64,000 nucleotides of DNA from positions 439,979,644 to 440,043,643 of the forward strand of contig NC_133619.1 in assembly GCF_048593235.1 (NCBI RefSeq). The letters run 5' to 3'. Every line of letters begins with the position of its first letter. Positions within the stretch are counted from its first letter, which is position 1. This DNA is from Sminthopsis crassicaudata. Its lineage: Eukaryota. Below, one piece after another: positions 42,951 through 64,000 of this stretch. The notes under the pieces are model-generated. The model was not told where the DNA came from, did no database searches, and was given only the letters and a program-made list of their open reading frames with translations. The translations under genes were made by a program, and so were the position numbers.

Positions 42951-44268
42951 TACTAACTACAGGGTTCTCAGATTGGCTAAGATGGCAAGAAATGAAAAAG
43001 ACAATAAAGGAAAGGGTGTGGTAAAAGTGGAACAACGATACATTCTTGGTGATCTTGTGAAAGAATCTGACCATTACACAGGCAAATTTGGAACTATGCC
43101 ACAGGGATAGGAAAATGTACATAAGATGGCTCAGGCCTATTCTGAAGAGCTTGGGATGGGGAGAGCCATCTACACTCAGAGAGAGGATTGTGGGAACTGA
43201 AGGTGGATTACAACATAGCATTTCAATCTTTTGGTTGTGCTTTATTTGAGGGTTCTTTATTGTGCGTAGGTACATATATATGTATATATAATTTTTTGAT
43301 TTTGATATGATTACTGTAGTGCAGAAAGAGAATTGTATCAATGGGTATGCCTATAGAGGATTCAACGTATTTTGTTAGCACGGTTAACGTCCCTTGGATT
43401 CGGTGCCATTTGGGGATGGGGTGGGCGTAGGGGGTGGAATTGGAGCAGGAGGATTGTCAAGGGTCAATGGGGAACAGATGATGCTAGCAGGCTTTCCCAA
43501 TTGTACAAGGTTCAATGACAAAACAAGGAGGAGAGGAGCAGCGGTGAGGGACTTGGCTCTTTAACACTTTGGGATGATTGGAGTTGATGTGAAAACACTC
43601 GTGGGGGGAAAGAGCCCTGAGCTGGCACAGAGGGAACTATGGAGAATGAGGGTGGCTCAAAGCATGGCGTTTGCTGTGGTGTTTTGTTTTTTGTTTCTTT
43701 GTTTTTTGTTTCTTTGTTTATTGTTTTTTCTTTTTTGTTTTGTTTCCTTGGCTCCTGGCTGGTTCGTTTCCTTCCCTCCTCCCTGAGTTTTGTGTTTGTT
43801 TGTGTTTCCTATGGTGCCCATTTCGCTGTAGGGCGGGAAAGTTGTGAAAATAGGGTTGGGGGATGTGCATGCGTTTAACCTGGACTGGAGTGTTTCTAAG
43901 CCGACCGAAGGGGGTGGGGGTGGCAGTGGGAGTGGGAGGGTCCGTCTGGAGGGGGCACGGGGAGGATGGTTTGTAGGGGGATGGGGAGAGGGGCGGGGGA
44001 GCTAGGGAGAAATACTTGGAACTCGAGGTTGCCAGGGTGATTGTGGGAAAGTGTCTTTTCCAGCGTTTGGCCGAAACCAAAAAAGCCGTTGAGATTATAG
44101 GCTATTAGGAAAGCTTCAACGAGCTTATCAATAAAAAGGAGATGCACACCACCTTTTAAACCAAAAGCTTGGTTCATTTTTTTTAATAAGTTGATTAAAA
44201 AACAACAGAAAAAGAGGGCCAAAAATGTAATTCCAACTGGAATTTTATCAGTATTTATCGAAATTGTA

Positions 44269-44274
44269 TTTATT
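44269..44274 (-). terminator. Polyadenylation signal of the array gene (also 50075-50080, 55880-55885, 61733-61738)
   Basis: AATAAA ~150 nt after the stop, followed on the minus strand by a U/GU-rich tract (plus-strand aaaaaacaacagaaaaag). Confidence 0.6.
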
Positions 44275-44421
44275 GGTTTGTGGGGCTTAACCCAAAGGAA
44301 AGCCCTGGGGAAGGAAAGAAGGAGTTATGGGAGGAGCATGTTCCTGCAGGAGCTGCGGGAAAGGGAAGGCAGGAAATGGAAGGCAGGGGAGCGAATGGAG
44401 CTGGAAGGAGCAAAGGGAGAT

Positions 44422-45057
44422 CTAAGCTGCTGGCCCAGCGTGCCGGAAGCGGACGAAGTCCTGCAGCCAATGGAGCTGTTGGATGTTCGTTGGGTGAAAC
44501 ATCAAGCCGAGCTCCTCTTCTAGGATGTCGAGCACGGGCAGCACATAGAGCTTGTGCAGCCTGGCGGCCAGCCTGGGGTGGTAGGATTCAGGCTGGAAGC
44601 CCGCCGGAGGCCGCACCTCCTGCAGCACCAGGGCCAAGTCCTCGAGTCGGCTGAGGAGCTGCGCAGCTGCCAGCTCGTCCAGCGCGCTCTGAATCTGAGC
44701 GAGAGCGTCCGCGGTGGGAAGCGAATCCTCGCTTTCATCCAGACACTCCAAGGCGTCGAGCAAGCCACCCAGGAGCTGGCACAGTCGTCGGGGGCGCAGC
44801 TGCTGCAGGGACGTGCCGATCCTCCGCAAAGCCTCGAGGAACTGCTGCTCCTCAGCCAGCACTTCTGGGTCCTCTCCCCTTAGGGAAAGCGGGTTTTGAC
44901 GCAGGCGCCGAAAGGAGCTGCGGACCATCCCAGCCCCTTCCCGCAGACACTCCAAGCCATACAGAAAACGGCCCTCTTCCAGCCTTGTCAGCCTCTCCCT
45001 CACTCGTTCCAGCCGCACTCTCCGCACCATCCAAAAGCCGCTTGATAGGACGCCCAT
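44422..45057 (-). CDS. Intronless 211-aa Leu/Glu/Arg-rich, probably all-alpha protein of unknown family, copy 1
   Basis: Open frame, GCCATGG Kozak, upstream TTAAAA, GC and CCAAT boxes, downstream AATAAA, GC3-rich codons. Confidence 0.7.
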   Translation of the reverse strand: MGVLSSGFWMVRRVRLERVRERLTRLEEGRFLYGLECLREGAGMVRSSFRRLRQNPLSLRGEDPEVLAEEQQFLEALRRIGTSLQQLRPRRLCQLLGGLLDALECLDESEDSLPTADALAQIQSALDELAAAQLLSRLEDLALVLQEVRPPAGFQPESYHPRLAARLHKLYVLPVLDILEEELGLMFHPTNIQQLHWLQDFVRFRHAGPAA

Positions 45058-45172
45058 GGCACACGCTCTTGACTTGAGAAAATCACAGGAACGATCCTTG
45101 CCCTGGCTCAGCTTAACGCTGCCTCCAGCCCACCTGTCTCCTTGTCAATAGCAGCCATGGCCACAGACGCTC

Positions 45173-61885: not shown

Positions 61886-62521
61886 CTAAGCTGCTGGCCC
61901 AGCGTGCCGGAAGCGGACGAAGTCCTGCAGCCAATGGAGCTGTTGGATGTTCGTTGGGTGAAACATCAAGCCGAGCTCCTCTTCTAGGATGTCGAGCACG
62001 GGCAGCACATAGAGCTTGTGCAGCCTGGCGGCCAGCCTGGGGTGGTAGGATTCAGGCTGGAAGCCCGCCGGAGGCCGCACCTCCTGCAGCACCAGGGCCA
62101 AGTCCTCGAGTCGGCTGAGGAGCTGCGCAGCTGCCAGCTCGTCCAGCGCGCTCTGAATCTGAGCGAGAGCGTCCGCGGTGGGAAGCGAATCCTCGCTTTC
62201 ATCCAGACACTCCAAGGCGTCGAGCAAGCCACCCAGGAGCTGGCACAGTCGTCGGGGGCGCAGCTGCTGCAGGGACGTGCCGATCCTCCGCAAAGCCTCG
62301 AGGAACTGCTGCTCCTCAGCCAGCACTTCTGGGTCCTCTCCCCTTAGGGAAAGCGGGTTTTGACGCAGGCGCCGAAAGGAGCTGCGGACCATCCCAGCCC
62401 CTTCCCGCAGACACTCCAAGCCATACAGAAAACGGCCCTCTTCCAGCCTTGTCAGCCTCTCCCTCACTCGTTCCAGCCGCACTCTCCGCACCATCCAAAA
62501 GCCGCTTGATAGGACGCCCAT
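61886..62521 (-). CDS. 211-aa unknown protein, copy 4
   Basis: Translation identical to copy 1. Confidence 0.7.
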   Translation of the reverse strand: MGVLSSGFWMVRRVRLERVRERLTRLEEGRFLYGLECLREGAGMVRSSFRRLRQNPLSLRGEDPEVLAEEQQFLEALRRIGTSLQQLRPRRLCQLLGGLLDALECLDESEDSLPTADALAQIQSALDELAAAQLLSRLEDLALVLQEVRPPAGFQPESYHPRLAARLHKLYVLPVLDILEEELGLMFHPTNIQQLHWLQDFVRFRHAGPAA

Positions 62522-62704
62522 GGCACACGCTCTTGACTTGAGAAAATCACAGGAACGATCCTTGCCCTGGCTCAGCTTAACGCTGCCTCCAGCCCACCTG
62601 TCTCCTTGTCAATAGCAGCCATGGCCACAGACGCTCCTTTTAAGCCCCCGCGGGGGGCGGGGGCAGGACACTCCAACCAATGGCAGGCGAGAGAGCAGGG
62701 GGCC

Positions 62705-63422
62705 TCTTTTGGGCCAGAACTTGAAGCAAGGTGCGAACTCGGTGCAATTGATAGGGACAATACGGATCTGATTGATGCAGTAGGATTGATTTCATCCTAC
62801 AAGGAGGTGTTATGGGCCACCACTTGAAACAAGGTGCGAGCTCGGTGGAATTGGGTAGTAGTTACCGGATTTAGCATGATTGATTCAGTACCATTGATTT
62901 CACCTTACCACAAAGAAGGGTTTCCTAGTGATAGAATAACGTTGGGTGTAGATTCAGTGTGGAGCATATAAGGGAGAAGGTCTCAGGGCAAGAAAAGACA
63001 AGCACACCACAAGCTCTCCGAGCCTCAGCCAGAATGACAGCTAGGGAAGACCAGAGAAGTGGTGGCGCTCCTCCTGCCTCCCGCCCAGAGACCAAGACAC
63101 GTTCAGGAGCACCTCGGGAAGCTGGCAGAAGCAGAGAACACAAAGGACTGGCCGCAGCACCTTAAGCTCTCCCAACCAAGGAGAGACATAGGCCTAGAAG
63201 AAAGCTAACCGCCCCTCCCCATCCCCCCAAAGGAGACAAGACTTTGAAAGAGACAATAAAGGATTTGCACTTTAACACCTGGCTGCATTTGGGGTGATTA
63301 CTGGACCCACACTAAGCCTGCCTCCAGAAGCCCCGCCTTCCCCCACTCCCGCACCCACCCACCCACCCCCGGCACAGAAACCTGCTCCCACATAACGTTA
63401 CATCTTAGACAAGAATATTACA
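62705..63422 (+). mobile_element. Solo LTR, unit 4
   Basis: As unit 1. Confidence 0.88.
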
Positions 63423-64000
63423 GGGGCCCCGGCCAGATCCCGGCAAGCTGTGGATCAAAACCCTCCGCTTCAGAGACCCTCACCTGCCCGGCTTCTCTCC
63501 ACCCCCTCCCACCTGGCTTCCCAGGGCTGCCGCAGAAGACAACGTTCCACCCGCTAGGGGGCCGCCTCTTGCGTGCAAAGGAGCATCAACCCACGGTGCT
63601 CCAAGGGCCACCGAAACTGGCCACGCGTGTCCTTTGATCCCACAGTGTCTCTGCCGGCCCCGGATCCCAGAGTCACCAGAAAGCAGGCGCAAGCACCCAC
63701 ACGGGCAAAAGGGATTCTGCCAAAACCTTTTCTCGCCAGACCCCGGGAAACTGGGCATGGACTCGAGGGCCATCACTTGAGGAATCATCGGTAGTGCCGC
63801 GATACAGCTCTACAGGAAATGCCAGCCGACCTGATGGACGAAAAGCGGACAAAACCGCTCCCGAAGCGATGCTGACCATAGTCAGCAGAAGCAAGAGAAC
63901 ATTGTACACAGCCACGACAAAAGGGGGACCCGCATGGCTGACAACCGAGAAAGAAAAGGGGCCGCCAATTTCCCACGTAAATATGTCTGCGCAAATCTTC

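Follow-up and report, generated by a model that had tools for sequence, protein, structure and literature searches.

Is a reading frame that recurs along a block of repetitive marsupial DNA a real gene, and how did it come to be repeated? This question was raised by a stretch of 64,000 nucleotides from the genome of Sminthopsis crassicaudata (contig NC_133619.1, positions 439,979,644 to 440,043,643), which is called the window below. From ~43 kb onward, the window is made of head-to-tail units of ~5.8 kb, each with one open reading frame (ORF) for a protein of 211 amino acids. By its architecture, the locus belongs to the gene-bearing macrosatellites, or ampliconic gene arrays, and the gene that it carries appears to be undescribed. 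We propose that a pre-existing, lineage-restricted intronless gene was amplified, together with ~5 kb of surrounding DNA, into a head-to-tail array by the steps set out below. The probability of this reading was estimated to be about 0.7. To our knowledge, most work on gene-bearing macrosatellites has dealt with primates and other eutherians. With a clear marsupial example, tests would become possible outside eutherians of the course that tandem amplification of orphan or young genes takes, of concerted evolution, and of the recurrence of transposable element (TE) insertions next to promoters.

Structure and edge of the tandem array

Head-to-tail copies with a start-to-start spacing of ~5.8 kb were seen both in a search for direct repeats and when one unit was compared with the window by BLAST. 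An 18-nt anchor recurred at 43120, 48926, 54736, and 60534, which defined units of 5806, 5810, and 5798 bp and a partial unit of 3467 bp. The structure is tandem. BLAST identity among the units was 99.4-99.7%, and their pairwise substitution divergence was 0.16-0.34% when the first 145 bp were excluded. Three features accounted for most of the differences in unit length, namely a 22-bp indel, a poly-C run, and a (TA)n tract. The (TA)n microsatellite, which lies within the L1 3' end near the start of each unit and is 6 to ~89 bp long, was the main source. Its length is a ready-made marker for distinguishing units in long reads. A two-unit higher-order repeat was considered from alternating variants at a few sites, and it was rejected since the pairwise distances gave it no support.

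The composition profile marked out the same block. GC content was 0.28-0.40 before 42 kb and 0.43-0.585 inside the array, with a periodicity of ~6 kb from ~43 kb. The left homology boundary was sharp at 43119/43120 and lay inside L1-derived DNA. The edge segment of unit 1 was 92% identical to its counterpart in the other units (11/146 differences), and past the (TA)n tract the identity of unit 1 to the other units was >99%. These results bore out most of what a sequence-only reading of the window had described: head-to-tail units of ~5.8 kb in a GC/CpG-rich block that starts abruptly after ~43 kb of AT-rich DNA, each with one intact intronless ORF, a core promoter, a poly(A) signal, a solo long terminal repeat (LTR), and an L1 relic. 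All of these were recovered, over 3.6 units. The abrupt boundary stood as well, but it had been placed at 43124, which is 4 bp off the true position of 43120.

Near-identical tandem repeats of kilobase scale are a classic source of mis-assembly. It was therefore considered whether a single- or two-copy locus had been over-expanded by the assembler, so that no true array exists. The junction was unconfirmed in independent reads, and the independent contigs found amounted to a short one only, the Logan contig L002 (run SRR30858928, 1345 bp). However, the four copies were separable. They were set apart by 18 substitution sites in differing combinations, by the 22-bp indel, by the length of the poly-C run, and by (TA)n tracts of 6, 42, 33, and ~89 bp. 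The array edge also showed a biologically sensible gradient of divergence. L002 itself encodes the exact 211-aa protein and is collinear with 51440-50096, with part of the LTR included. It showed three differences from the window, two in the LTR and one synonymous. Its terminus lies 29 nt from the inter-unit variable site at 50067. This end would fit a k=31 assembly graph that branches at the 50067 variant, and would be compatible with several copy types in L002's run as well. We regard an assembly artefact as highly improbable.

The gene and its counterpart in a second species

Each unit contained one intact intronless ORF of 636 bp on the minus strand, and the 211-aa product was identical in 4/4 copies. 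In unit 2, which was used as the reference for coordinates, the first ATG is at 50863 in a strong Kozak context (GCCATGG). A predicted core promoter, with an inverted CCAAT box, a GC box, and a TATA-like box, precedes the ORF, and an AATAAA signal follows it (Table 1). The promoter element was repeated in units 1, 3, and 4 at offsets of -5806, +5805, and +11658 from unit 2, with no inter-unit variants in it. At the level of sequence signals, promoter, ORF, and poly(A) signal were all present in each repeat unit. Every unit is thus a self-contained predicted RNA polymerase II (Pol II) transcription unit, and the array would multiply gene dosage.

Relatives of the protein were sought with a word-index search over 5.8 billion clusters, an exhaustive phmmer search over 1.84 billion representatives, and a two-sequence profile search. 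All three, covering ~15 billion proteins, returned one relative only, P0001, which is encoded on Logan contig L001 (run SRR16767750). The L001 ORF has 202 codons at 647-1255. It could be aligned over its full length to the window protein, starting at Met10 of the latter, with 59% amino acid identity. By the Nei-Gojobori method, nonsynonymous divergence (dN) was 0.31 and synonymous divergence (dS) was 0.52 over 201 aligned codons, giving a dN/dS of 0.59. Synonymous change was in excess, with dN/dS below 1 (Fisher P=0.0047). The gaps between the two sequences were multiples of three in the coding sequence, where only 3-nt indels occurred, versus 1, 1, 6, 11, and 2 nt in the flanks. GC content by codon position was 0.73/0.41/0.75 versus 0.66/0.41/0.72 in the two species, a strong period-3 pattern common to both. 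The layout upstream was also kept: the two loci could be aligned at the CCATTGG, GC-box, and TATA motifs and over a large part of the 5' untranslated region (UTR). The first ATG of the window is ATC in L001, and the conserved start is therefore Met10 (50836). The apparent Met-Gly N-terminus is particular to the window species. An upstream ATG at 50962-50964 (minus strand), which is ATT in L001, opens a 16-codon upstream ORF ~20 nt past the TATA-like box; this ATG probably lies upstream of the transcription start.

These data bear on whether the ORF is functional at all. It could be a frame left open by chance in the GC-rich core of a young segmental duplication or satellite, or it could be a recently dead gene. 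Chance can indeed keep frames open in GC-rich DNA, and the 211-aa ORF is overlapped by antisense ORFs of 120-140 codons. The dN/dS is high, annotated proteomes hold no homologue of the protein, and its structure models are of low confidence. However, the frame was kept over 201 codons at a dS of 0.52 with in-frame indels only, and dN was significantly below dS. The sense frame alone was open in both the window and L001, and every other frame was broken by 1-8 stops in each. Conservation with L001 also extended to the promoter and 5'UTR. We consider a non-functional ORF unlikely. Because the frame was kept, the indels were in-frame only, dN was lower than dS, and the promoter and 5'UTR were conserved, we concluded from the alignment that the ORF represents a true protein-coding gene, one that evolves fast and is still under constraint. 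The sole other similarity between L001 and the window was a 47-bp repeat fragment (L001 2243-2289, window 5234-5280; 87% identical). It is consistent with related genomes and is not diagnostic.

The protein has a mass of ~24 kDa and an isoelectric point of 5.8, with 20% Leu, 12% Arg, and 10% Glu. It contains no hydrophobic segment of membrane-span or signal-peptide length. Two AlphaFold2 runs gave eight or nine helices at low confidence, with predicted local distance difference test (pLDDT) values of 49 and 56. The protein is predicted to be soluble and all-helical. Conservation with L001 was highest at residues 135-209 (60-72%) and lowest at residues 85-134 (44-48%). One LxxLL motif was conserved between the two proteins. 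Foldseek searches of the predicted models returned only generic helical bundles, with template modelling (TM) scores <0.4 and best E values of 0.21 (PDB) and 0.08 (BFVD). These matches were dismissed as uninformative because the E values and TM scores were weak and the models were of low confidence. BH3-like 'LRRIG' and LDOC1-like 'VRPP...PE' stretches were noted and dropped since they had no Pfam support.

By sequence, the protein is an orphan. Pfam gave no family for the 211-aa ORF at E up to 10, and nothing meaningful for its L001 orthologue or for ten further stop-to-stop pieces of the unit. In PDB sequence searches, run with the protein alone and with the two-sequence profile, the best match was to herpesvirus gB at an E of 0.24, which is at chance level. 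No relatives of the protein turned up in IMG/VR or JGI metagenomes. An L1 ORF2 relic in the flank (36175-36579) had 24 relatives, and all the named ones were UniRef entries from Sarcophilus harrisii. This agreed with the earlier call that the DNA is marsupial. Since marsupial proteomes are thus in the database searched, the 211-aa gene appears to be unannotated there. Its absence from protein databases is probably due to its repeat-rich location, which is hard to annotate. Literature searches, which did not cover all journals, found no description of the gene and no marsupial macrosatellite or ampliconic equivalent. The sequence-only reading had not recognized the gene either, and with no Pfam or PDB match, one relative in ~15 billion proteins, and no describing paper found, that view held. 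The gene would be a clear instance of a conserved protein-coding gene under selection that is missing from current protein databases, and its locus is a specific one for annotators of marsupial genomes to check.

The solo LTR and the order of events

The LTR of unit 2 was flanked by a perfect 6-bp target-site duplication (GGGGCC at 51041-51046 and 51768-51773). Its interior contained TATAA at 51309 and AATAAA at 51597, and its 3' end read ...TTACA. The first ~103 bp, on the U3 side by the gene promoter, were tandemly duplicated (51049-51151 and 51152-51254, ~86% identity). At the 5' end, the sequence was TCTT for the terminal copy of this repeat and TGTT for the internal one. This duplication resembles retroviral enhancer repeats. 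A second copy of the LTR family was located in the AT-rich flank at 25845-26480 in minus orientation. It was ~74% identical and had the exact TGTAAT... terminus in common, and no clear target-site duplication was seen at this flank copy. In L001 the LTR site was empty, as sequence from both sides of the LTR aligned to contiguous L001 sequence. Given the target-site duplication, the termini, TATAA, AATAAA, the second family copy, and the empty site, the element in each unit is a genuine solo LTR of an endogenous retrovirus (ERV). It sits 16 bp upstream of the CCAAT box of the gene, in divergent orientation.

The gene itself could be a domesticated retroviral, retrotransposon, or viral gene (gag-like, as LDOC1, SIRH, and PNMA), or a retrocopy of a multi-exon parent, with the adjacent LTR as its original promoter. 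The gene is intronless, its promoter adjoins the LTR, and ~520 nt past the AATAAA signal there is an (AAAACAA)n-type A-rich tract (minus strand, 49510-49560). The superficial 'VRPP..PE..' motif and the N-terminal Met-Gly also point in this direction. However, the L001 locus has the gene and its promoter without the LTR, and the LTR of the window is antisense to the gene. Pfam found no gag or capsid domain at E up to 10. There were no IMG/VR relatives, no fold match in BFVD or PDB for the low-confidence models, and no parent gene in the protein databases. The Met-Gly start was not conserved in L001. The promoter was conserved between species, which argues for an old autonomous gene. An origin by domestication or retrocopying, with the LTR as the original promoter, is considered very unlikely.

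The LTR also provided an order of events. As it is absent from the empty site in L001, it inserted after the lineages split. As the LTR with the same target-site duplication is at one position in all four units, it inserted before the amplification. The locus offers a dated order, with the gene first, then the LTR insertion, and then the amplification. The sequence-only reading had suggested a lineage-specific gene amplification. This view was correct in part. The amplification may be species-specific, but the gene predates the array and is common to a second species at dS ~0.5; the species-specific part may thus be the amplification and not the gene.

We propose that the array arose in four steps from the pre-existing intronless gene. 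The common ancestor with the L001 species would have had the gene locus without the LTR. An ERV LTR would then have inserted 16 bp upstream of the CCAAT box and been reduced to a solo LTR. In the third step, the segment would have been duplicated by unequal recombination; the simplest course would be an exchange between the 3' ends of two L1 copies on the same strand, one on either side of the segment. Such an origin is suggested by the flanking L1 relic, which differs from the L1 of the units, is rearranged, and is collinear with it at 64-81% identity. Further unequal crossing-over and gene conversion would have expanded the array and held the units at ~99.7% identity. The outermost 145 bp would have escaped homogenization or would keep the divergence between the two L1 copies. 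The outcome would be a multiplied dosage of a rapidly evolving, still constrained protein.

Several points weigh against this reading. The dN/dS of 0.59 indicates weak constraint, and the differences by codon position (51/51/68) showed only a mild skew. The depletion of variants in the ORF among units was not significant (P=0.13). The N-terminus is uncertain because the first ATG is not conserved. The visible array of 3.6 units is a lower bound on its size, as the window ends inside unit 4. Junction-spanning and variant-bearing ORFs were sought by exact-protein look-up in independent reads, and none was on record. Finally, the model of L1-L1 recombination and the model of an unhomogenized edge of an older array predict the identical pattern and would be inseparable on these data.

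CpG content bears indirectly on germline expression and on methylation control. The ORF body is a CpG island (GC 0.63, CpG observed/expected ratio (o/e) 0.71), and the upstream segment 51700-52480 is also a CpG island (o/e 0.65). The L1 part of the unit was CpG-depleted (o/e 0.25). The L001 orthologue was less CpG-rich (o/e 0.48). CpG that is kept over the ORF and upstream segment and decayed in the adjoining L1 is the pattern expected of DNA that is unmethylated in the germline. Alternatively, the retention could come from GC-biased conversion in a recombining array. The old L1 3' fragment at 51938-52480 was unusually CpG-rich (o/e ~0.65) compared to the neighboring L1 relic (0.25). Either the fragment may fall within the unmethylated domain of the gene, or GC-biased conversion may again be the cause.

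If the array behaves like CT47, TAF11-like, DUX4, and other ampliconic genes, its gene would most likely be expressed in the germline or early embryo only, a pattern that we put at roughly even odds. Repeat-induced silencing would most likely apply outside these stages. The LTR U3 with its duplicated segment could serve as an enhancer for the gene promoter. The LTR could also start plus-strand transcripts that run antisense into the gene of the next unit, as has been proposed for RS447. A further interpretation is that the gene belongs to a marsupial-restricted orphan family, and that the landing of the LTR and the amplification made it a high-dosage germline or cleavage-stage factor. It would then be an independent analogue, from an unrelated protein, of the LTR-linked arrayed genes that act in the early embryo or in meiotic conflict in eutherians (DUX4/Dux, Zscan4/Tcstv, and Slx/Sly-type amplicons). 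We regard this interpretation as unlikely.

Comparison with known arrays and remaining features

The locus was compared with described macrosatellites. The CT47 macrosatellite at human Xq24 has a 4.8-kb unit in 4-17 copies, which places it among the macrosatellites of lowest copy number (PMC5687341). CT47 is primate-specific and known to be testis-specific. It shares with the present locus a unit of ~5 kb, a small array, and one small lineage-restricted protein gene of unknown function per unit. There was no sequence similarity, and the marsupial gene is older than its own array (orthologue dS ~0.5). CT47 is the nearest analogue when array size and a lineage-restricted, uncharacterized protein are compared. 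The TAF11-like macrosatellite at human 5p15.1 has a 3.4-kb unit with a 594-bp ORF in a mosaic with LTR and TE fragments (PMC5687341). Both it and the present unit carry an ORF of ~200 aa (594 bp versus 636 bp) in a TE mosaic that includes an LTR. They differ in that TAF11 is a known family whereas none was found here, in unit length (3.4 versus 5.8 kb), and in the position of the LTR 16 bp from the promoter here. TAF11-like is the closest analogue in ORF size and in its LTR-containing TE-mosaic unit.

RS447/USP17 at human 4p16 consists of units of ~4.7 kb with an intronless ORF and a functional promoter in 20-103 copies. An antisense transcript was proposed as its regulator (PMC5687341). An intronless ORF with its own promoter, predicted in the present case, is likewise found in every unit. 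However, USP17 is a deubiquitinase, and Pfam did not find a UCH domain in the 211-aa ORF. D4Z4/DUX4 at human 4q35, considered along with the DUXC-family arrays, is similar in its GC/CpG-rich unit, single intronless ORF, head-to-tail arrangement, and AT-rich flanks. It differs in the homeodomain, which Pfam did not find in the 211-aa ORF at E up to 10. Stabilization of D4Z4 RNA hinges on particular polymorphisms (PMC5687341), whereas AATAAA was present in every unit here. DUX arrays are described across placental mammals (PMC13558733). The locus had originally been likened to D4Z4 and RS447. The architecture supported this comparison, but the protein did not, with neither a homeodomain nor a USP domain, and CT47 and TAF11-like are closer. 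Membership of the DUX, USP17, TAF11, or CT47 protein families was rejected, as Pfam found no defining domain and there was no named relative in ~15 billion sequences.

Table 1. Coordinates of the array, gene, and repeat features in the window (unit 2 is the reference copy).
Feature	Coordinates	Strand	Remark
Tandem array	43120-64000		3 full units and one partial, ~5.8-kb period
Unit 1	43120-48925		full
Unit 2	48926-54735		full, reference for coordinates
Unit 3	54736-60533		full
Unit 4	60534-64000		partial, window end falls inside
Edge segment of unit 1	43120-43264	+	compared with its counterpart in the other units
211-aa ORF, unit 1	44422-45057	-	stop included
211-aa ORF, unit 2	50228-50863	-	reference copy
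211-aa ORF, unit 3	56033-56668	-	
211-aa ORF, unit 4	61886-62521	-	
Predicted core promoter, unit 2	50979-51025	-	CCAAT box, GC box, and TATA-like box
Inverted CCAAT box CCATTGG, unit 2	51019-51025	-	
GC box, unit 2	~50994-51005	-	
TATA-like box CTTAAAAGG, unit 2	~50979-50986	-	
AATAAA poly(A) signal, unit 2	50075-50080	-	~148 nt past stop
AATAAA poly(A) signals, units 1, 3, 4	44269-44274, 55880-55885, 61733-61738	-	
Solo LTR, unit 2	51047-51767	+	721 bp, antisense to gene
Solo LTR, units 1, 3, 4	45241-45958, 56852-57572, 62705-63422		
CpG-rich segment upstream of gene	51774-52555		GC 0.55, o/e 0.65
Older L1 3' fragment with A-rich tail	51938-52555		
L1 ORF2/3'-end relic, unit 2	52346-54735	+	~2.4 kb, CpG o/e 0.25
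Segment 3' of gene	49303-50074		diverged L1 3'-end pieces
(TA)n microsatellite, units 1-4	43265-43270, 49077-49118, 54881-54922, 60688-60776		
CTCF-like 15-mer CCGCTAGGGGGCCGC	46087-46101, 51896-51910, 57701-57715, 63551-63565	+	2 consensus mismatches; one per unit, in CpG-rich segment
Flanking L1 ORF2 relic	41476-43119	+	distinct from the L1 of the units, rearranged
N runs in flank	4008-4241, 31449-31652, 31947-32219, 37497-37691		195-273 bp, outside array

The remainder of the unit was mostly of L1 origin. The L1 relic of unit 2 ran into the next unit, crossing the 54735/54736 junction unbroken via (TA)n to ~55107 (equivalent to 48926-49302), and the L1 was likewise uninterrupted at every junction inside the array. 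The segment 3' of the gene held most of the inter-unit substitutions. Upstream of the gene, 51791-51937 was weakly collinear with the upstream region of L001. CTCF binds D4Z4 and DXZ4, and the CTCF-like 15-mer in each unit is of interest for this reason. Window-wide, CTCF-like matches were not above chance, with 5 found versus 3.7 expected. Neither Rfam nor tRNA scans gave a family in the window or L001, and an snRNA or tRNA array like RNU2 was ruled out on this basis. The flank contained ordinary microsatellites, (AC)n and (TCTA)n, at 15120-15162 and 38812-38885.

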